Positions 13,728 through 51,110 of a DNA stretch of 64,000 bases are shown here, in pieces. Below the pieces are notes generated by a model, which had not been told where the DNA came from, searched no databases, and saw only the letters and a program-made list of their open reading frames with translations. The position numbers were made by a program, and so were the translations under genes. The stretch is from Chlorokybus atmophyticus (lineage: Eukaryota; Plantae; Mesostigma and Chlorokybus algae): assembly GCA_009103225.1 (NCBI GenBank), contig RHPI01001715.1, forward strand, positions 640,099 through 704,098, read 5' to 3'. How positions within the stretch are numbered: the first letter of the stretch is position 1; the number at the start of each line of letters is the position of its first letter.

Positions 13728-16126
13728 ATGGTTCTTCCTGGACAGCTTGCTTCAATAACGGCTTGCAGCGGTTGCACGCGGCTCTTGTTGCACAAACACC
13801 AGCTCGCAGCCCCTGCACTACCGCTGAGGCGGTCAGTTGTCGCGGTAGCGTCGGGCCAGCATAATGCGCACAAACGCCCAAAATCACGCTCAAAGCGCAC
13901 ATCCCGAGCCAAGCCTGGTAGCAGGGCACGCAGACGGAGCTGTTCTGATCCTCGGCAGCCCAAACTGCCTCCATCACCCGCCATTCAGGTAGGCAGGCCA
14001 CCCCCAGCGGCTGGTCGGCGAAGTTGGTGTTTGGTTGAAGTTCTCTAGCTAAACCTAAATTTATGGACCATCAGGTGGACCGTGAGGGTGGGGCGAGCTG
14101 CAGTGGTCGGCCGGAGCTGACCAGGCTGCTGGTCGAGAAGCTGGTGCTGGGCGGAGAGGGGCAGCTGGTGCACCAAGCGGAAGCGCGCGCAGAACCTATT
14201 GATCCCGAGATCATGACTGATGAAGTGCCCAAAGTCCGGCAGCCTTCTTTCCTATCGCAGTTGACGATGCCTGATCTAACTCAGGTGAGAGGGCTACACT
14301 TCTGTGCAGCTGTTCTAGGTTATAGACGCATCAGTGTGTTGACGCCTTACACATCTACAGGGGCAAACTGCTGGAGTGTTGGCATTCTTAGCTGCGCTAT
14401 ATGGCACAAACTCAGCAGCTTGTAAAGTGATAGAGGAGACCTGCAAGATGCCTGCCACCCTAGCCTGCACACTTCGCTTTGGTCTGGCGACTATTACCCT
14501 ACTGCCCTGGCTGTTTGGCGAAGCTATCGAACAGGACTTGTTGCTTGCCGGCGCGGAGCTGGGTTTCTGGCTCTTTGCTGCTGTTGCAGCTCAGGTGGCG
14601 GCTTCGGCACACGCCACTGTCGCTGGGTCAGCCTCTATGAAGCTGTTGTTAACGATTGGGTTGGTGCTCGCCTTTGAAGCCGGCAATGTCTTCAGCAGAA
14701 AGCGGATATCCAAGCGCACCTGGTTGGCTGCGGGAGTGTCATTGTCAGGTCAGTGCCAAAGTGAATTGTCATGTGTTTGTGAGAGCTGGTACATGTGTCC
14801 GTTGCTAACCACCTTGTTTTCACAGGAATGTTGGTGCTTATGAGTATGGGCACAGACCTGACCGTTGGTCTGTTTCCGCTGAACGACCTTTGGAGTGTGC
14901 TTGCGGTGCTGCTGTTTGGTTTCCACACATGGCGCTGCGAGGCTATCTGCAGCAAAGTGGACGCCACCAGCATTGCGCGGCTGGCTGGCATCCAAATCGG
15001 TGTCGTCACCTTGCTGTTCGGCCTTTGGGAGGTGCAGGCGCTCAGTTCTGTCGGCAACTTGATGGACATTGCCAGTCTCCTGAACACTCAGCTCACTGGT
15101 CTGCCTTGGGTCTCTCTCTTGTACGCTGCCTTCATCTCAACCGGCCTGTGCCTGTGGCTTGAGCTGAACGCACTCAGAGGTGCCAAGGCTTCCACTGTAA
15201 CACTGATGTATAGTACCATCCCACTTTGGGGTGCATTCTTTGACTTCGCTCTGCGCGGAGAGTTGGAGCCTGCAGTCTCATCACTTGCTGCTGCAGCCGC
15301 TGCAACAGGCGCCATTAGTTACTGGCTATTGAAGCCCAAGACCCTCACCCAGCGGCTACCCCGAGCGGCGTCTCCCACACAAGAGAGCTTTTTGGACCAG
15401 CTGACAACTGCGTTCGTCACATCGCAGCTGAAGCTAACCCAGTACACGCGCCTGGTGCAGCAAGCTATCACTGGTCATGGCGCTGCAACAGCACTGCACT
15501 TCAAAGGTGTCACTGCATCCGCTCTGGCTGCAGCGGCCTCGATGAACTCCGTTGTGACAGAGGTGGCAAGAGATATCACTGGCGCAGTGGCTGATTTTGA
15601 GATGCGAGTTGCTTCAGGCATGCTCACAGCAGCAGTGTCTGCGCAAACCATGCAGCGCTTTGGTGACAATGTAGCTGCCCGTACTGCTAGCCCCGGCCAG
15701 TTCCTGTACTATGCAAGCTCCGGCTCAAGCGCTGTAGCAGAGAATGCTATGTCGAGTATGCTCAAAGCCACTGCTGCTGTGGGCATGCCAGACATGGCTG
15801 CAACAGTGGCAGCAGCTCTAATCCTCGCTGATGCTGGAGAGCTTCCAGATGTTGATGGCGCTACCAACACCGGCATTGTCCTGGCCAGTGCTGCGATTGA
15901 CTCTGTGGCGTCATCCCTCCAGCAAGCTGCAGGTGCCTCCATTGGCCACACCTTGGTCAGCAATACCGTTGGCACTGTGTTGGCTTCAATGCCAGACTCT
16001 GCACACGCCTTCGTCACCACAGCTGCGGATGTTGTGTCTTCTGGCGCTTGGGACACTGCTACTCTTGTGCAAGCTGCAGACGTCGTGAACGCCACCGTGA
16101 ACTCCATCTCCGACGTGTTCGGTTAA
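13728..16126 (+). CDS. EamA/DMT-family transporter with plastid-transit-like N-terminus and long Ala/Ser/Thr/Val-rich C-terminal extension, 4 exons
   Basis: Exons 13728-13989, 14076-14285, ~14361-14748 and ~14827-16126. Motifs ALYGTN, LRFGLA, AGAELG, STGLCLWLE...ALRGAKASTVTLMYSTIPLWGAFF are typical of plant/algal EamA proteins. Confidence 0.75.
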
Positions 16127-37697: not shown

Positions 37698-38416
37698 ATC
37701 ATCATGTGCGCACTGCTGACGAATTTGCCTCATCCACCCTTTGGCTCGTGCGCCCACTCACCAATCTTGCTATCCAGTGACTGCGGCCCTAAGCTTACTC
37801 GCTTGCCACCAGCGAGTAAATGCAAAACTGCTGACACAACCGGATGAGTCCAGTCACGTCATTTGTGCAATGCAATTGTTCAATGCGTCTCGACAACGAC
37901 GGGTACAACAGCTCCGTGTGAACTACTGACGTGACACAAGCAGTGGGTCGAGTGAATCAGTGTTTCACAAGGCCAGAGGCTGTCACATCGAGTTGCCAAG
38001 CGGGTGCGTGGAAGTAGCGGCGGCGGCGGCGGCGGCGGAAAAGGAGGCGGCATATTGGTGACATCGACGGTTGGTTTTGGTTGCGTGGGTGTTGAGAGGG
38101 CAGCTGAGGAGGTGCCTGCACTGGCTGTGCTGCAGCTGGACGGTTACTGTGCCGCCAGCGCTTATTTGCCATCCTTGACATGACTGGAGGTAAGCTAGCG
38201 CTAGCGCCCGGCTCGCAGGTGTGATCACAGTAGCACATTCCCCCAATCTGCGGGTGGCCAGCTGGTTGGCATTCTTGTTACAGGTTGTCTTCAACAATTG
38301 AAAGGCAAAAGCGCTAGCATACTGTAGCTGAGCACTGTTTCAGCTAACTGCAAGTGAGGCTGTGGATTGCTTGAGACACGGCTTGTGGGGCAGCTTGGGC
38401 GGGGAGGGGGTAAGCA

Positions 38417-41169
<2,753 letters not shown>

Positions 41170-41340
41170 AGCTGCTATGAATATGCTTTTGCAGCGGGTG
41201 TGAGCACACGTGACTTTCTCAGGTTACAGGCTTGAAGTGACAAAGACACAAGTAAAGTCTGGAGCGATTCTCAGGGACAATGCTAGCTCTGGCTGGCACG
41301 CATCCAACAGTGGCTATAAGGTTGTGTAGAGGGTCACAGC

Positions 41341-41372
41341 GTGTGTAACATATATGCAATGTTATGCATGTG
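41341..41372 (+). repeat. 32-bp direct repeat (left copy), probable target-site duplication of the Penelope-like element
   Basis: gtgtgtaacatatatgcaatgttatgcatgtg, identical to 45100-45131. Confidence 0.85.
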
Positions 41373-44300
41373 ACCCCATTGCATTGTGAACATGACATGC
41401 ACACACACACGCACACTTGCACACGCCAGCAAACAACTTCTTACACCACCGGGCTACCTATACAAACTAGGTAGCTACTTTCGCTAAGCCCTTGCCCCGT
41501 TAGTCCACATGCATGCGTAGTTACCTGTACACAAGTAAAGTCCCCACAGTTAGGCACCGGTGTGGCTGTAGTTGTGGCAGCAGCACAAAGCAGACGGACT
41601 CCCCCTCCCTCTGCTCTCTCGCTCTCTCTCCACCCGCCGCCCTGCTTCTCTCTTGGCAGTCTGCCCCTGCTGCTGTTGACGCTGCCAGGGTTGCAGTGTC
41701 AACGTCAGCAGTACGCAACTGCGTGCAAGGCTGTCGCGACTTGCCCGCATGGTCGTCAGTGGCTGAATGTCGCATGCTGTGCCCGTGCAGTCGGTTGTGG
41801 TTTGGGGCTGGCAGTTAGGTGCTGCGGTGGGGTTGGGTGGTGGGGTTGGAGCGACATTTGCTTCGCACGGGCAGGCTGCTTTTCCACGCAGCTTGCTCCC
41901 CGCGCATGATGCCTGTTGGGCAGTGTGTCATTGCCGGTGCTGCACGTCTTCAGCGCTGCGGGTGTTGCTTCACCTTCACCTTCTTGACGACCATCATGTA
42001 CAACAGCATTGGTGGTGTGCAATAGACGTACTCCTTGCTGCGCAGCAGCGTTTGCCTGAGGGTAGTGAGCAGCTTGTTCAAGGGGTGTCCATCACGCTGC
42101 ATGGCGTGAATCAAATCTGTCATGGCTGTCAGGAAGTGTGTTCTGTAGGTACACACGCGGGTGAAGCGCGCATACTGCGAGCTGATGACACCCAGCTGCA
42201 CTGTGCGCGGGGTGTTTGCGGTTGGCAACGGGGCTCGGTGGTGCGGTATCGTGCTGTAGGCTGGCAAGTCCCGTTTACTGTACAGTTTGGTACAAATGCC
42301 GTCCTTTGTTTGAAACACCTCCAAGTCCAGAAACGGCACTTTCGTACCCACAGCTGTTTGTGTCATGGTGAGGCTGTCCCGTGGGTACAAGCCTCCTCCG
42401 GGTACGTGCGGGTCCATGTAGAGCAGCCGCTCAAAGTCTGGGACTCCCACGACGAAAAGGTCATCAATGTAGCGCAAGATGCCGGTGGCGCATCGCTGCA
42501 ACAGTTGCACATGGCCCTGTTGTCGCAGGTGTTCCATAAAATCCAACTCATATGTCAGCAAGTCACCATTGGCTAAGTGCACCCCCGCACTGTTGTGCAT
42601 GGGGATGCCCACTCGCTGCTTGTACAACTCATCACTCGCCGTGCGTATATACAAGTTGTCCAACAGAAATGCCAGCACGTTGTAAATCAACTCCGCAGTG
42701 AATGTTCTCCAGGTGCCTTCCTCGTCCGTCCGGTACTGTGCTGCTGCTGTCCACCGGTGCTGTACCGATCTGTCCGGGTTCACGGTCAGGTGCAAGTGTG
42801 TGGCACGGGTACGCTGGTGCTGCATGTGAAATGTGGCATTGACCAAGCTGTGCATGCGCTCGAGCAGATATGTGTGCTGTATGCGTGTATAGCGGGTGGA
42901 GAAGTCAAAAGTCCGCAGCAACAAAGGTTGGCGCTTGTCTTGCACTGTGCGTGTGGTGTTAAATGCGGCTTGCAATCTGCCAAAAGCTCCGGAATCCTTC
43001 ATAATCCAGCTGTGGTGTACTGTTGATAGCCCCACTACTTCCTCCCACAGTTGATGCCAAATGGGTGTCATGCATTGATAGCCTCTGCTCAGCCACAAAC
43101 TGGCATCCGCCAGTGAACTGTCACGCGCCGCCGCTATGAAGCGTGGTTGAGGTGGAGTCTTGTGTAGTTTGAACAACAAGTACAAGTGCGGCAGCTTGGG
43201 CTGTTGGTGTAATTTCGCAGTATAGTAGTCATGCAGTTGATTCATCCATTGTGCATGCCGTTGCAGCACTGCCTGGGCCTGTGCATCTTCACGTTCATAT
43301 GTCTCCGTCAACAATTCTTGCGTCAAACACAGCCAGTAATGCTTCCTGCATACTGCTACCAGAGTCCCAGTGCACTTGTCCACTTCTGTAATGATAAAGT
43401 CCCGATGCAGCAACTGCAAAGCTGCAGCATCCCACGGCGCCATAGTATCCGGTGCGTGGTTTACATTTTGTCCCTGGTACTTAGGCATGGCGGTAATGGC
43501 ATCCGCACGTTGGCGTACCAGCGACAGCAACGTTGTCACCCACTGTTGCAAGACAAAAGGCAGGCCCCACTTGTTCTCTAGTTCGCTTGCAAAACGCGAC
43601 ACAGCAGATGTGATTGCTGGCAAACACACAGCGACGTCAGCCGGCACCTGGCTCCGGAACTTGGCCCCACGCTGCAGTATCCCGCGCAGCACGGTGGAGC
43701 ATGTCACGCGGTCGTAGTCACAGCTGACTACATGGTTCAGGTCTGCATGCAGCTGGCCTCTCCACTGCGGTTGTTGACACACGCACAGCGTTGCCGACAT
43801 GACCTGCACTTGCTGCAGGGCGGTCGATGCCAGGAGGTCTCTTGTGCGATTGCAGAGCATTCTTCCCACCGATTGACTACAACGCCACACCACCAGTGGC
43901 TGGCCCAGGCGTGCTTGCAGGTGTGCGGGCAGCGTTGCCAGCAGCAAGGGGTGTGATAGTAGCTTTTGCAGTTGCAGTTCATCAGCTGCGCCATTGGCAA
44001 ATGGGCATGCTATCAGCAGCCTTGCACTGCGGGTTTGCGGTAATGCAGTTGGGTAGTTGGCAAGCAGACGCGGCAGGGTTTCTGTGAGTGTAGCAGCATG
44101 ACTGGGTAGCACGCGCAGGTCTTGCGGCGCTGTATGCAGTAGCACATTCAACATCTTGCACAAGTTCAGCTGCTTGAACTTCAGCAGATTGGCAAGGGTC
44201 AGGCGCTGTTGTTGTACCCGCTCAGCCAGTCTTTGGATGCGCCTAAAGAAGTCTCTGTAGCCAAAAGTTCTGCCTGGTTGTTCATGTGGTCGTGGTTGTG

Positions 44301-45099
44301 GTTGTCTCCTCAACTGCTGGCGTCTCCAGTGTGGTAGTCTCGCACTTTTGTAGGGGCCATGTTCCACATTGTATCCGCGTGGTACATGTGTATGCAAACG
44401 CTGCGTCCACAACCATTCTTTCTGTGCAGCCCGGTGGTGCCAAGCATCATTGGTTTCATTGGGCAAGGGAGGTAAGTACTCTATTGGTGACACTCCCCAC
44501 GACTGCACGGGTATCTTGCACATGGTTTGTTCCAGCACAGTAGCAGTCGGACGATGTGCAGCTCCCCAATGCCCTTGATACCGCTCAAATGCCGAAGGCA
44601 CTGTCATGCCCACGTAACACTTCTTCGCGCTAGTCAGCAGATATATCACATAAATGACATGGTTGTCCTCGGTCGTCGACAGGCACCAGGGCGTGTGCAA
44701 AATGTGCAGCACTCGCTTGCGTAATCTTCTCAACACTGGCAGCTGCCAATGCCAATGCACGTCCAACACTTGCGCTTTGATGCTCTGCCAATCCCTTGCC
44801 GGTGATGCCATGGCGCTGTTCCCTTCGCAGCACTGCTATGTATGATCAAACGGGGTGGGCACTATTTCTAGCTAACAACACAGCAGCTGTCTAGATCAGT
44901 TCAACATGCAGAGTGCGCCCGGTCAAGCACTCACAACATACAAAGCGCATGTCACTCATGACATTCAGGACATCACAACGCATATGTGGCATGCACGAAC
45001 CCATGCCGAAGCATAGGGTAGCCAGCCGCTTACCCAAAATGGCGCAAGCGCGCTGGGCTGGCCTCTGGCTTGGGACGGTCGGACTGACCAACCAGGGCA
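41373..45099 (-). mobile_element. Penelope-like retroelement with N-terminal GIY-YIG endonuclease (Chlamys/Naiad-type), apparently full length
   Basis: Bounded by identical 32-bp direct repeats; a single 953-aa ORF with EN-CxC-RT order. Confidence 0.88.
41950..44811 (-). CDS. GIY-YIG endonuclease + CxC linker + Penelope-type reverse transcriptase (953 aa, intronless)
   Basis: EN motifs VIYLL..YVGMT, ERYQGH, KEWLW, RGYNVE; CVC..H linker; RT motifs LYLLFKLHK..PRFIAA, TFDFST, QRVGIPM, RYIDDLF, VPFLDL and C-terminal TKLYSKRD. Confidence 0.92.
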   Translation of the reverse strand: MASPARDWQSIKAQVLDVHWHWQLPVLRRLRKRVLHILHTPWCLSTTEDNHVIYVIYLLTSAKKCYVGMTVPSAFERYQGHWGAAHRPTATVLEQTMCKIPVQSWGVSPIEYLPPLPNETNDAWHHRAAQKEWLWTQRLHTHVPRGYNVEHGPYKSARLPHWRRQQLRRQPQPRPHEQPGRTFGYRDFFRRIQRLAERVQQQRLTLANLLKFKQLNLCKMLNVLLHTAPQDLRVLPSHAATLTETLPRLLANYPTALPQTRSARLLIACPFANGAADELQLQKLLSHPLLLATLPAHLQARLGQPLVVWRCSQSVGRMLCNRTRDLLASTALQQVQVMSATLCVCQQPQWRGQLHADLNHVVSCDYDRVTCSTVLRGILQRGAKFRSQVPADVAVCLPAITSAVSRFASELENKWGLPFVLQQWVTTLLSLVRQRADAITAMPKYQGQNVNHAPDTMAPWDAAALQLLHRDFIITEVDKCTGTLVAVCRKHYWLCLTQELLTETYEREDAQAQAVLQRHAQWMNQLHDYYTAKLHQQPKLPHLYLLFKLHKTPPQPRFIAAARDSSLADASLWLSRGYQCMTPIWHQLWEEVVGLSTVHHSWIMKDSGAFGRLQAAFNTTRTVQDKRQPLLLRTFDFSTRYTRIQHTYLLERMHSLVNATFHMQHQRTRATHLHLTVNPDRSVQHRWTAAAQYRTDEEGTWRTFTAELIYNVLAFLLDNLYIRTASDELYKQRVGIPMHNSAGVHLANGDLLTYELDFMEHLRQQGHVQLLQRCATGILRYIDDLFVVGVPDFERLLYMDPHVPGGGLYPRDSLTMTQTAVGTKVPFLDLEVFQTKDGICTKLYSKRDLPAYSTIPHHRAPLPTANTPRTVQLGVISSQYARFTRVCTYRTHFLTAMTDLIHAMQRDGHPLNKLLTTLRQTLLRSKEYVYCTPPMLLYMMVVKKVKVKQHPQR

Positions 45100-45131
45100 G
45101 TGTGTAACATATATGCAATGTTATGCATGTG
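45100..45131 (+). repeat. 32-bp direct repeat (right copy), probable target-site duplication
   Basis: Identical to 41341-41372; the flanking bases differ on both sides. Confidence 0.85.
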
Positions 45132-46016
45132 TGATAGATAACAGTCTGAGAGCGCGTGGAGCCGTCTAACGTACAAGTTTATGCTGCTGCCTTGTGTAGT
45201 ATTGTAATGCATGCAGGTTTTTGTGACATAGGATGTCAGCCAGTGTCACTGATATTTTCGGTGTGCTTGTCGTCGTGTCCATATTGGATTTTTTGTGTCA
45301 GCAAAAGAATGTGCAGCTCAGTATCACAACAAACTTGTGACTGACAAGTGATACCTAGCATCCATGTGTGAATCACTGTACAAAAGATGGTACGCTAGGA
45401 TGGTCACATGCACGGTGTCACAGCCACAACACATGCATGTTGTCAAGCACACAACGCATGCAGGCAGACACCACCACTTGTATTACCACCCACCACCAGG
45501 CCAAGGCTACCTCGCCAAAACTGTGGACAAGCTGCATATTGCCAAACAACAGATACAACAACATTGGTGCACTGTAGTAGACATCCAACTAGCTGTGCAC
45601 GCATACTACGCACACTGAGCGCGCGCAAAAAAACTGGCACACCGCAGCAGTAGAGCAGCGAACTGACTAGCGGCAATATTAAGTTACACCGTTACCTTGC
45701 TAAGGTACTGTACATAGCTGTCTAGACTGTGCAACAGTAGCATCCTCTGCTGCTCTTGCTGGCATACCAATGCAGGCAGATGATAAGAGTAGGAACAGGA
45801 AACACCCACCAGCTACGAAAGAGCTTGCAGTGGTGCCGGCTGGGACTTGTGATGTACACGTGATAAGTGTTATCCCAATTTGCTGGCGAAGTGAAGCTCA
45901 CACAGTAGCCCAGCCGTGCAGATGGACTCGCCGTTGGAAGAAGCATACGCTGGCTTGAGTATAGTGAAGCTGTGCGAGCTTAACTTGTCGTTGGTGCGGA
46001 CAAAGGTGGTCGCCCA

Positions 46017-48336
46017 TCAATTTGCCCACACATGCACCAAACCCTGTTTGTTGCCAGTGTAGATCTCATTGCGATCCTCATCGTAAAACAACGCGGTTAC
46101 TTCCTCCAGAGCATCGTGCGTGCGATAGCTCTTGTCAGACCCAGCTTGAATCTTTGCCAGACATTTGCCGGTGAGAATGCTGGAAATGTTGATGGAACCA
46201 ACCACTGCGCGCCACAGGCATGTGTCACCATATGTGTCAGCATTGCAAAATGCATAATTGGATCAGTGGCAAGGCAGCACCACTTACTGTGGCCTTCTAT
46301 CCTCCTGTCATCTGGATGCGGTTTGCAATACGAGATGATCAGGTCCTGGTCACTGGTGATGTAGATGTTGTTTGTGTTGCAGTCAGGGTACCAAAGCAAG
46401 TGATCCTCAAAACTGCCAAGCCGCAAGATATGTAAGTAGTAAAAGATAGGAAGCATGTTACTCAATGCATGCAGACTAATGTGCACAACGCATATCAGGA
46501 GATACCTAGTGACAATTTCACCGCGGAAGTTCCAGAGTGCCACTGTGCGATTTCTGAAAGTGAGAAACAACTGGTTCTCGTACAAAAATATGAAGGCTGA
46601 GGGTGTCATGAAGTCTGTCCTGCTGACTTCAACCAGCTCTGATGTGCGAACCTGAAAAGTCACAGGGAGACACAAGGAACCAGGAGTGTCAACAAGCATC
46701 CCAAGAAGACATAAAGGGCAGTGTCAACTGCAAAGGCAACAACATGCACTCACGTCGAGAATCTGGAGATTCTCGTTTTCTTGCTTCACAAGCAGCTTTT
46801 CATTAAACTGTTCAATGAAGTCCACTTTTTTGTTTCGGTGAAGCATGTGTGTAAAGTCCTTCAGCACCTGCACAAAAGTCGTTTTACATAAAACTTTTAA
46901 CCGCTGATGACTGCAGGACTCACCTTGCCATCTTCAATTGAAAGGATCTTCAGCGGCACATGACTTTGCGCTCGGTCAAAAATTAGCAGCATGATGCCGG
47001 GACTGCAAGAAGTTACAGGAATATAGTCCGTCTGACAGCAACAGCTTGGGAGCGGGACAGAAAACACACGCAGTACCTGATCTTGATCTCTTGGACATTC
47101 TTGTCCGAGATTTGGTACAACAGGTTGTAGTTCTTCAGATCAAAAACTTTGTACACCCTGAACGTGTGAAAAAATCAACGTTGGACCTAACAGTCATCAG
47201 CAAGCTGACGCGAGCTCCTTACTGGATTTACCTGTCTTGTGCAGAGTATGTCAACACCTTAGCATTGACATCATCAAACTCAACAAATCCAGGCCATCGT
47301 AGCAGCTCTGACTCAAATAAAGGAAACCCAGCATCTGGCTGGCCGCGTTTGATATACCTGAACGTCAAAATGATGTTGGAGGGGGTTGCACGCACAAAGG
47401 GATACATTCACCCACACAACGACATCGACATGCTGCAATACGCTTACTCTATGGGCGTTGTCCTGCACTTGAGGGAGCTGAAGTTGTCACTAGCATACAC
47501 TGACACTGTGATTAGTGAATTATTGTTCTTGTTGTAGAAGAGGCTCCTGATGACTTCATCTGAACTAATGTTGAGGAAACATATTCGCTTGTTGGTTTCT
47601 GCCACAAGCAACACAGATATGTCAGCTGAGGTGGTAAGTACTAAGCAACCACAGCATACGGACTTATTGCAAAATATGCACCTCTGCTAAAAGCCGCGCA
47701 AACACCGGAATGTGCAAGAGCAAAAACAATGTCCCTCGCCGCAACGATCTCAACAATCTTTGACCTATTCTTGAAAAACGACAACTTCAAAAAGGCATGG
47801 GACTCTGGGTCATATGTGTCGTACTCCTCCTGCACATAAGACTGGTCAGCTAAGCTTTGGCAGGTATCACACAACACGTTGCAGCACATGTGTTTCCTGC
47901 AAATTGAGAAGGCCTGATCCGACTTTAAGACTCCTAACTTTGGCCAGAGGCAAGCATTTGTGAACGAGCTCCCTCCAAAGCTAATATTATAGTTACATTG
48001 TTACACACCATCACCGACGTCCAGGATGTGGCCATCGGTGCATGCCTCATACGCCCAAAATTGTTGAAACACACCAAGAACAGACGCTACACACACTGCC
48101 TTGCAATGCACCTGCAGCGCGAGGTTGCGGAACTTCTCGGCAGCGTTGAAGCGGTTGAACTGCAGGTTGCCCTTGCGGGAGATCTCGCGGCAGAACAGCT
48201 TGCGAACGTAGTTCTGGCCGTCAGCAAGGTGGTCGCTAGCTCTTTGCCTCTTGCCTGGCACAGCGCCCATCACCCGCCGCCCGCCCGTGGGCCGCGGACT
48301 CCTCCTTGTGATGCCCACCCCGCTGCAGGCCTCCAT
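46017..48336 (-). CDS. Conserved plant/algal WD40-like beta-propeller protein (multi-exon)
   Basis: Spliced exons give VRKLFCREIS...FNAAEKFRNL, SFFKNRSKIVEIVAARDIVFALAHSGVCAAFSR, FMTPSAFIFLYENQLFLTFRNRTV.LWNFRGE, FEDHLLWYPDCNTNNIYITSDQDLIISYCK and TALFYDEDRNEIYTGNKQGLVHVWAN. Confidence 0.8.
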
Positions 48337-49680: not shown

Positions 49681-51110
49681 GTGTCACATGCCAAGCAGCG
49701 TGTCTTTGCAGAGTTTGTATGTTTTACATTCGCATGCGATATGTGCTGTGCCTTAACATTTGGTGCTTATCAATTGTTCATGGTAAAATCATGACTATAA
49801 CATCGTGTTAACAATGTTATGTTACACGCATTGTTTGACATATACACACAATGCACAAGCCTTGTGCATTATACTATGCACTTTATGACATAATTATCGG
49901 CATGTCTACATGAATCCTACTTGAAAATGGTACCGAGATTACTTTACATACATGTCTACAATACATTTGCTTTGACATGTGAATGTCAGATCATATGTAT
50001 AGCTATATTTTATGCGAATCTATTTTGCATGTAAAGTGGGCTCGAACAAGTATATGGTAAAAACATCATTACCTTTAAGATATAGATAAAGGTTATCTCG
50101 ATTACCCCACGCTTTGTGCGCGCAAGTGCGCGCACACATGGCATCACCTCATGTAGATGTAGATGGCATTTTTGTGATTGATATAGAGATGATAACATTG
50201 CACGTTGCCATCTGTAAAGCATTTGAGGATACATGTGCATATCATAACAACGTTGATTCGATAATTGCACAGCATAATTGATGCGTTTAACTGATGATCG
50301 TATATGACAAAACACCCTACATAACACATATACCTTATACATAAATGTTATACACAAATTTAAGCCCCCCACCCATTTGGAGCCCCCCACTCAGACAGCA
50401 ACATCTTCAAAACGGGCAAGTTTTGAGTAGTGGTGTTGCAATATGTTAAGTTTACTCGCATTTGCACACTACGAGAGCATTTTGCCGTGGCCATGGTGCA
50501 ATTATTGAGGGACGTGCAAGCTGACGGATATACTACAAGTAGGATGTTGGCCAAGTTGCAAGCCAAGATGTACAACGCGCATGGAAACAACTACGACACC
50601 ACCCATTAACGACTGAACCTGCAGATAGCATGCAAGTGCACATTACCGGCATATGTAAGTAAGGTAAGCTGCTGGTTGTCCAAGGTGCGGGGAGCAGCTG
50701 TTACCGTAAGTGACTGCCCGTACATGTTTTATCGGCACGTATGACAAGTGCATGATTGCCTCTATGCGTGATGGCACATATGCATAAGCAATTGCGTATG
50801 TCATATGCAATCATACAATGTTGTTGACTGTGCCTAACTCCCAACGGCTTTGTTGTTGTTGTCCGCCCTACAATCCCCTGCAGCCATTATGGACACTTTA
50901 TCAATCTTACTATACACCGAATGGACCACACATACACCCTAAAGCCGCCATCTTGAGCAGCAGTTGCATAGCACCGCAAGCACCCCGCCCTCCGCCCTGC
51001 CTAACCTGCATGCACTTGCTGCTGCGCTACGCTCTTACCTTGCCTTGCACTACAGCCAACCTTACAAGCGCCTGTTGCACAGGCATGCTTGCTTCTTTGC
51101 CGTTCTTCTT

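Follow-up and report, generated by a model that had tools for sequence, protein, structure and literature searches.

In Poseidon PAc of Anolis carolinensis (Frangieh et al. [quoted passage not shown] These Penelope-like elements (PLEs) have a C-terminal nuclease with the CCHH motif, a hammerhead ribozyme, pseudo-LTRs (pLTRs) and AT-rich targets. The Naiad elements of invertebrates have the order nuclease, CxC, RT, with DK(A) and GxKF motifs and without a canonical hammerhead; they carry CCHH and a CX2-5CxxC linker, and their IFD is shorter. [quoted passage not shown] They are 3.3–8.2 kb in length and show a target bias towards (CA)n or (C)n; target-site duplications are often not discernible, and pLTRs, partial tandems and inverted 5′-truncated copies are frequent, although not obligatory (PMC8557442). 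Craig et al. 2021 curated Chlamys families from several hosts, the alga Chlorokybus atmophyticus among them, and deposited them in Dfam (PMC8557442).

We analysed a 64-kb stretch of C. atmophyticus DNA (64,000 nucleotides, hereafter the window) in which positions 41373–45099 form a 3,727-bp unit, inside the published Chlamys size range. Its minus strand carries one uninterrupted ORF of 2,862 nt (41950–44811) that starts with ATG and encodes 953 amino acids plus a stop codon. We consider it highly probable (about 0.92) that the unit is a single full-length copy of a Penelope-like retrotransposon of the Chlamys type, with an N-terminal endonuclease. The ORF alone matched nothing in Pfam, NCBIfam or the PDB sequences, and a profile of five sequences found nothing relevant in the PDB; an exact look-up of the 953-aa protein returned no record, and a scan of metagenome loci returned no relative. 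Homology searches gave 1,558 relatives at E ≤ 0.001, the closest being only ~30–35% identical, and Pfam matches among 32 full-length relatives were to GIY-YIG (19/32) and RVT_1 (13/32). Because the ORF alone is unmatched and its best relative is this distant, the assignment draws on profiles, motifs and predicted structure. The original prediction had described an intact 953-aa ORF with the order GIY-YIG, CxC, RT, a PLE-type, telomerase-related RT and a nuclease without CCHH, located between the convergent 3′ ends of two genes; all of this agrees with the results given below, and the interval that it proposed proves to be bounded exactly by a perfect 32-bp repeat. Its suggestion that such elements were undescribed in this lineage was mistaken: a 443-aa host ORF in the window matches, at 100% identity over 98% of its length, the C. 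atmophyticus protein jgi/Chlat1 Chrsp31S04892, and the Chlamys type was already described in this species in 2021. The copy is an ordinary one.

The protein was modelled with AlphaFold from an 88-row alignment (pLDDT 88.7, compared with 49.8 from five sequences). Motifs, profile and structure agree on the order of its domains. The GIY-YIG domain (aa 50–151; 44359–44664, minus strand), assigned from profile, VIA structural comparison and alignment, contains VIY (52–54) and YVG (66–68), and Y54, Y66, G68, R77, H81, E132 and N148 are all present; R77, H81, E132 and N148 line up with the relatives and with I-TevI in the alignment. The family profile matches I-TevI (E = 6e-5), and the modelled domain superimposes on its catalytic domain (PDB 1ln0 and 1mk0) with a VIA Z of 12.6 and an r.m.s.d. 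of 1.9 Å over 90 of 92 residues at 21% identity, sharing the fold and the positions of the catalytic Tyr, Arg, His, Glu and Asn, although I-TevI, which comes from a phage group I intron, acts as a stand-alone homing endonuclease and has a DNA-binding domain of its own. An Arg-rich, disordered linker follows (aa 153–184; 44260–44355, minus strand; pLDDT <50, 26% K+R over aa 151–200) and corresponds to the KR-rich/NLS block reported for N-terminal EN+ PLEs (PMC8557442). A confidently folded, mostly helical domain (aa 185–311; 43879–44259, minus strand) lies outside the range of the structural matches. Next comes the pre-RT helical domain (aa 312–470; 43402–43878, minus strand), recognized from motifs and from alignments to telomerase reverse transcriptase (TERT), with CxC (C343-V-C345, then H360) and GxKF (G382-A-K-F385). 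The RT fingers and palm (aa 471–865; 42217–43401, minus strand) include DK (D478-K479-C480), RT1/2 (K548, H550, K551 and R557), motif A (FDFS, D636), motif B (QRVGIP; Q732, G735 and P737) and motif C (YIDD, D783 and D784). Both CxC cysteines are conserved in 98–99% of 141 relatives, and G382, D478 and K479 in 98–100%. The spacing from motif A to motif B and the model place an IFD-like insert at aa 646–718 (42658–42876, minus strand), modelled as a helix, beta strands and a helix. A helical thumb, or C-terminal extension (CTE), completes the model (aa 866–953; 41953–42216, minus strand) and aligns to the TERT CTE.

The unit is exactly the stretch between the two copies of a perfect 32-bp direct repeat, at 45100–45131 (upstream in element orientation) and 41341–41372 (downstream). 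The 32-mer occurs twice in the window, against a chance expectation of 0. Between the repeats and the ORF lie a 5′ untranslated region (UTR) of 288 nt (44812–45099, minus strand; 55% GC) and a 3′ UTR of 577 nt (41373–41949, minus strand; 58% GC), the latter with an AC-rich tract and a (TG)n-like tract close to its end. RNA structure was not above that of shuffled controls in either the 5′ UTR (z = −0.98) or the 3′ UTR (z = 0.72), and an Rfam scan of 38000–48000 found no family above noise and no hammerhead ribozyme at E ≤ 1. The 3′ end of the element reads ...CAATGCAATGGGGT, without an A-run, and we found neither a poly(A) nor a simple-repeat tail there. A search in and around the copy for a pLTR, partial tandem or long direct or inverted repeat turned up nothing beyond the 32-bp terminal repeat, itself perhaps a minimal form of such a structure. 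The window holds no second (sibling) copy; a 59-aa remnant at 50367–50543 is the sole other trace of the element in it.

The element lies in a spacer on which two genes converge with their 3′ ends. On the side of lower coordinates are plus-strand exons of an NAD-dependent epimerase, the last epimerase-like reading frame of which ends at ~41166; on the other side is a minus-strand DUF7899 ORF (46097–46699). Both neighbours were judged solely from separate, unspliced reading-frame pieces. The flanking duplication together with the intergenic position indicates an insertion.

There are two candidate explanations for the 32-bp repeat: a long target-site duplication, or the 'tail' known from PLEs, an optional extension of 30–40 bp that is usually found at one end only (PMC8557442) and that, in vitro, corresponds to the interval separating two internal RT start sites of a multi-copy template. 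A distinct possibility, if short of an even chance, is that the repeat is element sequence, a tail or minimal pseudo-LTR, and not host DNA. On this reading, a tandem or read-through template would have been reverse-transcribed from a start ~32 nt past the unit boundary, and the unit would be 41341–45099 plus a 32-bp terminal redundancy. The length of the repeat fits the scale of the tail, which is also that of Poseidon PAc and Penelope; the target-site duplications of rotifer PLEs are shorter (8–10 bp), and there is no further short duplication around 41341–45131. However, the 32-mer resembles the surrounding spacer, being 34% GC and rich in TGCATG-like words; the adjoining UTRs are 55–58% GC. 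Published tails are mostly at one end. In element orientation, the first letters of the 32-mer are CACA and the last are ACACAC, and such CA runs at the bounds would accord with the published (CA)n bias of Chlamys elements (PMC8557442); the 32-mer is not itself a microsatellite, and a bias could show only across several copies. A duplicated target site would set this clean flanking repeat apart from the many Chlamys insertions in which no such duplication is discernible.

The original prediction had also called the element young and possibly active. A recent insertion would be consistent with the perfect flanking repeat. The case for activity is weakened by RT motif B. Residue 739, encoded by the codon CAC (42595–42597, minus strand), is His in this copy and Gly in 140 of 141 relatives, a difference from the other Chlamys elements; CAC is at least two base changes away from any Gly codon. 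Two further substitutions, L749G and Y/F750D, are also non-conservative. His739 suggests that the RT of this copy may be impaired, and a sibling may therefore have generated this copy, or may be what it relies on. That the element is autonomous and currently active is accordingly unlikely in our judgement. An intact 2,862-nt ORF, the perfect repeat, the complete set of nuclease residues and RT aspartates and a sequence that follows its family at 66 of the 75 strongly conserved positions speak for activity; against it stand the three motif B substitutions and the missing pLTR, which holds the transcription start in Penelope and Chlamys-3_cRei, and the repeat, by calculation, bounds divergence only at ≤ ~9%.

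Naiads share with this element the order of the domains as well as CxC, GxKF and DK. Taken with the IFD-like insert and the absence of CCHH, the CxxC linker and the hammerhead, these motifs fit Chlamys rather than Naiad. In the nuclease alignment, the query has neither C-x2-C between VIY and YVG nor an upstream CX2-5CxxC linker, whereas seven relatives in the same alignment clearly carry both. The A-to-B spacing of 96 aa lies close to the median of CCHH− relatives (94) and is longer than that of CCHH+ relatives (81). In an unrooted RT tree of 128 sequences, built by a quick method and labelled for CCHH by our own motif rule, the CCHH+/CCHH− label is explained by two changes, and the clade of the query (42 rows, SH-aLRT 94) includes 13 CCHH− members and no CCHH+ members. 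The position among CCHH− sequences and the green algal host also argue against a Naiad, and the N-terminal nuclease and the lack of a hammerhead argue against the canonical EN+ types (Penelope/Poseidon, Neptune, Nematis and Hydra). We therefore regard a Naiad or a canonical PLE with a C-terminal nuclease as very improbable.

The modelled RT resembles TERT more than any other solved RT. The 18 best Foldseek matches of the model are all TERT (E = 3.6e-10 to 1e-4), VIA comparison of model residues 312–953 gives TERT Z scores of 13.5–19.4, and a Foldseek-independent VIA scan of 48,161 chains places four TERTs on top. In that comparison, 350–490 residues align to TERT; the TERT alignments that begin at model residue 312 cover 409–493 residues, compared with ≤352 for any other polymerase, and sequence identity to the query is 9–13%. 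Like TERT, the query has an insert at the IFD position; unlike TERT, it is a mobile insertion, with a nuclease and without a TEN domain. Judged from the predicted structure, the RT of the element is of the PLE/TERT lineage. It is hardly credible that the ORF is a host RT gene that was domesticated, or that the element is LINE-like (non-LTR) or of group II type: group II, R2 and LINE-1 RTs do match structurally at Z of 11–13 (13.1, 12.6 and 12.0 in the VIA comparison), but TERT matches more strongly and over more residues, the nuclease is GIY-YIG and neither an APE nor a restriction-like endonuclease (RLE), the poly(A) or simple-repeat tail of a LINE is missing, and the flanking duplication and intergenic position point to an insertion and not to a host gene.

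The Chlamys-type protein may resemble telomerase beyond the RT core. We tentatively suggest, at less than even odds, that aa 312–470, with the PLE-specific CxC and GxKF motifs, could correspond in structure to the RNA-binding domain of telomerase (TRBD), and that the model from residue 312 to its end could form a TERT-like TRBD–fingers–palm–thumb ring. The domain lies within the range aligned to the TRBD side of TERT: the TERT alignments begin at model residue 312, which is paired with the first TRBD residues of human (322–325), Tribolium (4–5) and Tetrahymena (222–227) TERT. These are the ends of alignment ranges only, and the alignments of some viral polymerases and of HIV RT likewise begin near residue 322. 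No isolated TRBD chain was among the matches of the 48,161-chain structural scan, and the literature that we searched treats the TRBD as TERT-specific.

By analogy with its family, the Chlamys-type element would be transcribed, and the 953-aa protein would use its helical pre-RT domain and telomerase-like RT ring to bind the RNA of its own element. The I-TevI-like GIY-YIG domain would then nick chromosomal DNA, and the freed 3′-OH would prime reverse transcription of the RNA, an order of events that corresponds to target-primed reverse transcription. A second nick on the opposite strand, 32 bp away, would produce the 32-bp duplication; both nicking sites are putative.

The value of this copy is mainly in annotation, with exact boundaries and domain coordinates, because this type of transposon is known and has already been curated in the same host. 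The ends of the copy are unusually clean. Should the 32-bp repeat be a genuine target duplication, its length would tell how far apart a Chlamys nuclease places its two nicks, a spacing that matches the 30–40 bp of the PLE tail. The His at a near-invariant Gly of motif B is a natural variant that may mark a dead copy or reveal an unexpected tolerance. The high-confidence full-length model shows the degree to which a Chlamys protein is TERT-like outside the RT core; if the TRBD-like reading is true, the ring and its RNA-binding module would have existed before Penelope-like elements and telomerase diverged.

The element occupies 41373–45099 and carries an uninterrupted 953-aa ORF on the minus strand (41950..44811; reading-frame analysis of the window). 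The ORF alone had no Pfam, NCBIfam or PDB sequence match; the motif-based original prediction of a permuted-domain Penelope-like element (PLE), with GIY-YIG first, then CxC, then RT, therefore needed independent support. A word-index search returned four relatives, one of them colinear with 96% of the query, and an exhaustive HMMER search found 1558 at E ≤ 0.001 (95 below 1e-30), with a highest identity to the query of ~35%. Pfam GIY-YIG is matched by 19 of 32 full-length family members and RVT_1 by 13 of the 32, and a profile of these members matched the I-TevI catalytic domain (E = 6e-5) with GIY, YVG, R, H, E and N aligned. The AlphaFold model, built on an 88-sequence alignment, is confident (mean pLDDT 88.7, pTM 0.76), with disorder only at aa 1–5 and 153–184. 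A confidently modelled, mostly helical domain (aa 185–311; 43879–44259, minus strand; block pLDDT mostly 83–97) separates the basic linker from the CxC domain and had no structural match in the match lists obtained.

Comparisons of fold place the RT with telomerase. The best 18 Foldseek matches in the PDB are all telomerase catalytic subunits (TERT; E 3.6e-10 to 1e-4); DRT2, group II intron RT and R2 rank below them. With VIA-align, 17 TERT entries aligned with model residues 312–953 at Z 13.5–19.4 (350–490 aligned residues), one further entry, a low-resolution Tetrahymena TERT map, giving Z 10.9; the values for group II RT (Z 13.1, 274 residues), R2 (Z 12.6) and LINE-1 (Z 12.0) do not favour a non-LTR or group II grouping. 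For model residues 50–151, I-TevI aligned at Z 12.6 (rmsd 1.9 Å, 90 of 92 residues, 21% identity). A scan of 48,161 representative chains, run independently of Foldseek, put four TERTs on top (Z 14.6–17.7) and I-TevI next. Together, the profile and fold matches show that the ORF does contain a GIY-YIG nuclease at its N terminus and a telomerase-like RT. The TERT alignments start at model residue 312, which pairs with the first TRBD residues of human, Tribolium and Tetrahymena TERT, and cover 409–493 residues compared with at most 352 for any other polymerase. The TRBD is treated as TERT-specific in the papers searched. This weakly suggests that the CxC/GxKF domain sits where the TRBD would in a TERT-like ring, weakly because the alignments were given as range ends only and the matches of some viral polymerases likewise begin close to residue 322.

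PLEs with an N-terminal nuclease are defined by CxC, GxKF/Y and DK(x) motifs, an IFD-like insert and no canonical hammerheads; within them, Chlamys differs from Naiad in having neither a CCHH motif nor a CX2-5CxxC linker (Craig et al. 2021, PMC8557442). C343-V-C345 with H360, G382-A-K-F385 and D478-K479 are present in the query and conserved in 98–100% of the family, and the query's Arg-rich disordered linker sits where that study places a KR-rich block. In the nuclease alignment, seven relatives carry an upstream CxxC and a C-x2-C between GIY and YVG, neither of which occurs in the query or in the other 24 relatives. [quoted passage not shown] RT motifs A and B lie 96 aa apart in the query (medians 94 without CCHH and 81 with it), and the model insert there runs helix, beta strands, helix. 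An Rfam scan found neither a hammerhead nor any other family above noise. Judged by sequence, the element has every Chlamys-defining feature that was testable here, and the original classification holds.

This kind of element and its presence in C. atmophyticus are already known, as Chlamys elements have been curated from this alga, with consensus sequences and seed alignments deposited (PMC8557442); the idea of a lineage in which they were undescribed is therefore wrong. Among the relatives, a 1054-aa transcript product of Amoebidium parasiticum (P0157/P0006; EukProt EP00123) is colinear with the window protein (27% identity over ~980 columns, E = 1e-78) and has the Chlamys layout: GIY-YIG without C-x2-C, then CPC, GTKF, DKA, FDFST, GIPMGT and YIDDL. 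The text of PMC8557442 does not list Ichthyosporea as Chlamys hosts, and no paper in the literature searched mentions both 'Amoebidium' and 'Penelope'. Transcriptome contamination being possible, we regard the product as a candidate Chlamys-type element in Ichthyosporea.

The element is immediately flanked on each side by an identical copy of a 32-bp direct repeat (41341–41372 and 45100–45131), a 32-mer absent elsewhere in the window with up to 3 mismatches allowed (0 expected by chance). In element orientation, the unit begins with a 288-nt 5′ UTR and finishes with a 577-nt 3′ UTR (...CAATGCAATGGGGT) with no poly(A) run at its end; as RNA, both UTRs show no more structure than shuffled sequences do. 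The window contains no further copy of the element and no long repeats, whether direct or inverted. A 14-nt word, GACTTTACTTGTGT, read on the minus strand, occurs in the 3′ UTR (41540–41553) and in the host flank (41252–41265), ~80 nt beyond the downstream 32-mer, probably by chance. We favour, at a probability of roughly 0.6, a host target-site duplication made by nicks staggered by 32 bp: the 32-mer has 34% GC and abundant TGCATG-like words, like the surrounding spacer and compared with 55–58% GC in the adjoining UTRs, and its CACA start and ACACAC end (element orientation) fit the Chlamys bias for (CA)n targets (PMC8557442). A less probable but serious alternative is an element-derived 'tail' or minimal pLTR, since PLEs carry an optional 30–40 bp extension (PMC8557442), shown to match the segment that separates two internal RT start sites in a multi-copy template (Frangieh et al. 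2024, PMC11167929), and since reported PLE target-site duplications span only 8–10 bp. A pLTR or partial tandem is frequent but optional in Chlamys, and is absent from this copy. In an insertion route drawn by analogy from Penelope and PAc, the protein would bind its own RNA and the GIY-YIG domain would nick DNA; the freed 3′-OH would then prime reverse transcription, after which a second nick and repair would complete the insertion.

The insertion lies between convergent gene ends, as predicted, ~175 bp past the epimerase stop. On the plus strand are epimerase/dehydratase exons (Pfam matches 39464–39895), with the last epimerase-like reading frame ending at about 41166; on the minus strand, the neighbour originally called WD40-like is a DUF7899 ORF (46097–46699; Pfam, E = 2e-37). 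The match covers part of the profile, so the whole gene is probably longer, with this ORF as one large exon. A 59-aa segment at 50367–50543 (plus strand), preceded by stop codons, is what remains of another, divergent Chlamys-like PLE (39% identity over 59 aa to the thumb region of the main element, aa 856–913) and looks like a 5′-truncated, decayed insertion. Elsewhere, a 443-aa ORF (14795–16126, plus strand) with a weak EamA-transporter Pfam match (E = 3.4e-4, short of the curated threshold) aligns across 98% of its length, at 100% identity, with jgi/Chlat1/4864/Chrsp31S04892 (EukProt, C. atmophyticus, 719 aa), which carries an EamA domain on record; this identity confirms the host alga and points to scaffold Chrsp31.

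The element had also been predicted to be young and possibly active. The perfect 32-bp repeat limits divergence only to a calculated ~9% or less, and a young age is therefore plausible but poorly constrained. In favour of activity are the intact ORF, the retained catalytic residues of the nuclease and aspartates of the RT, and a match to the family at 66 of the 75 strongly conserved positions. Motif B, however, reads GIPMHNSAGVHLANGDLL in the query versus GIPMGTNCAPxLANLYL in the family: at position 739 the query has His, where 140 of 141 relatives have Gly; the His codon, CAC, differs from every Gly codon by two bases or more, and L749G and Y/F750D are non-conservative as well. In RTs this Gly follows the conserved Gln/Met of the PQG-type motif lining the template and dNTP site, a location that makes impaired polymerase activity of this copy a reasonable worry. 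Transcription starts in the pLTR in Penelope and Chlamys-3_cRei, and this copy is without one. The motif B changes probably predate this insertion, and the activity of this Chlamys copy in C. atmophyticus is doubtful.
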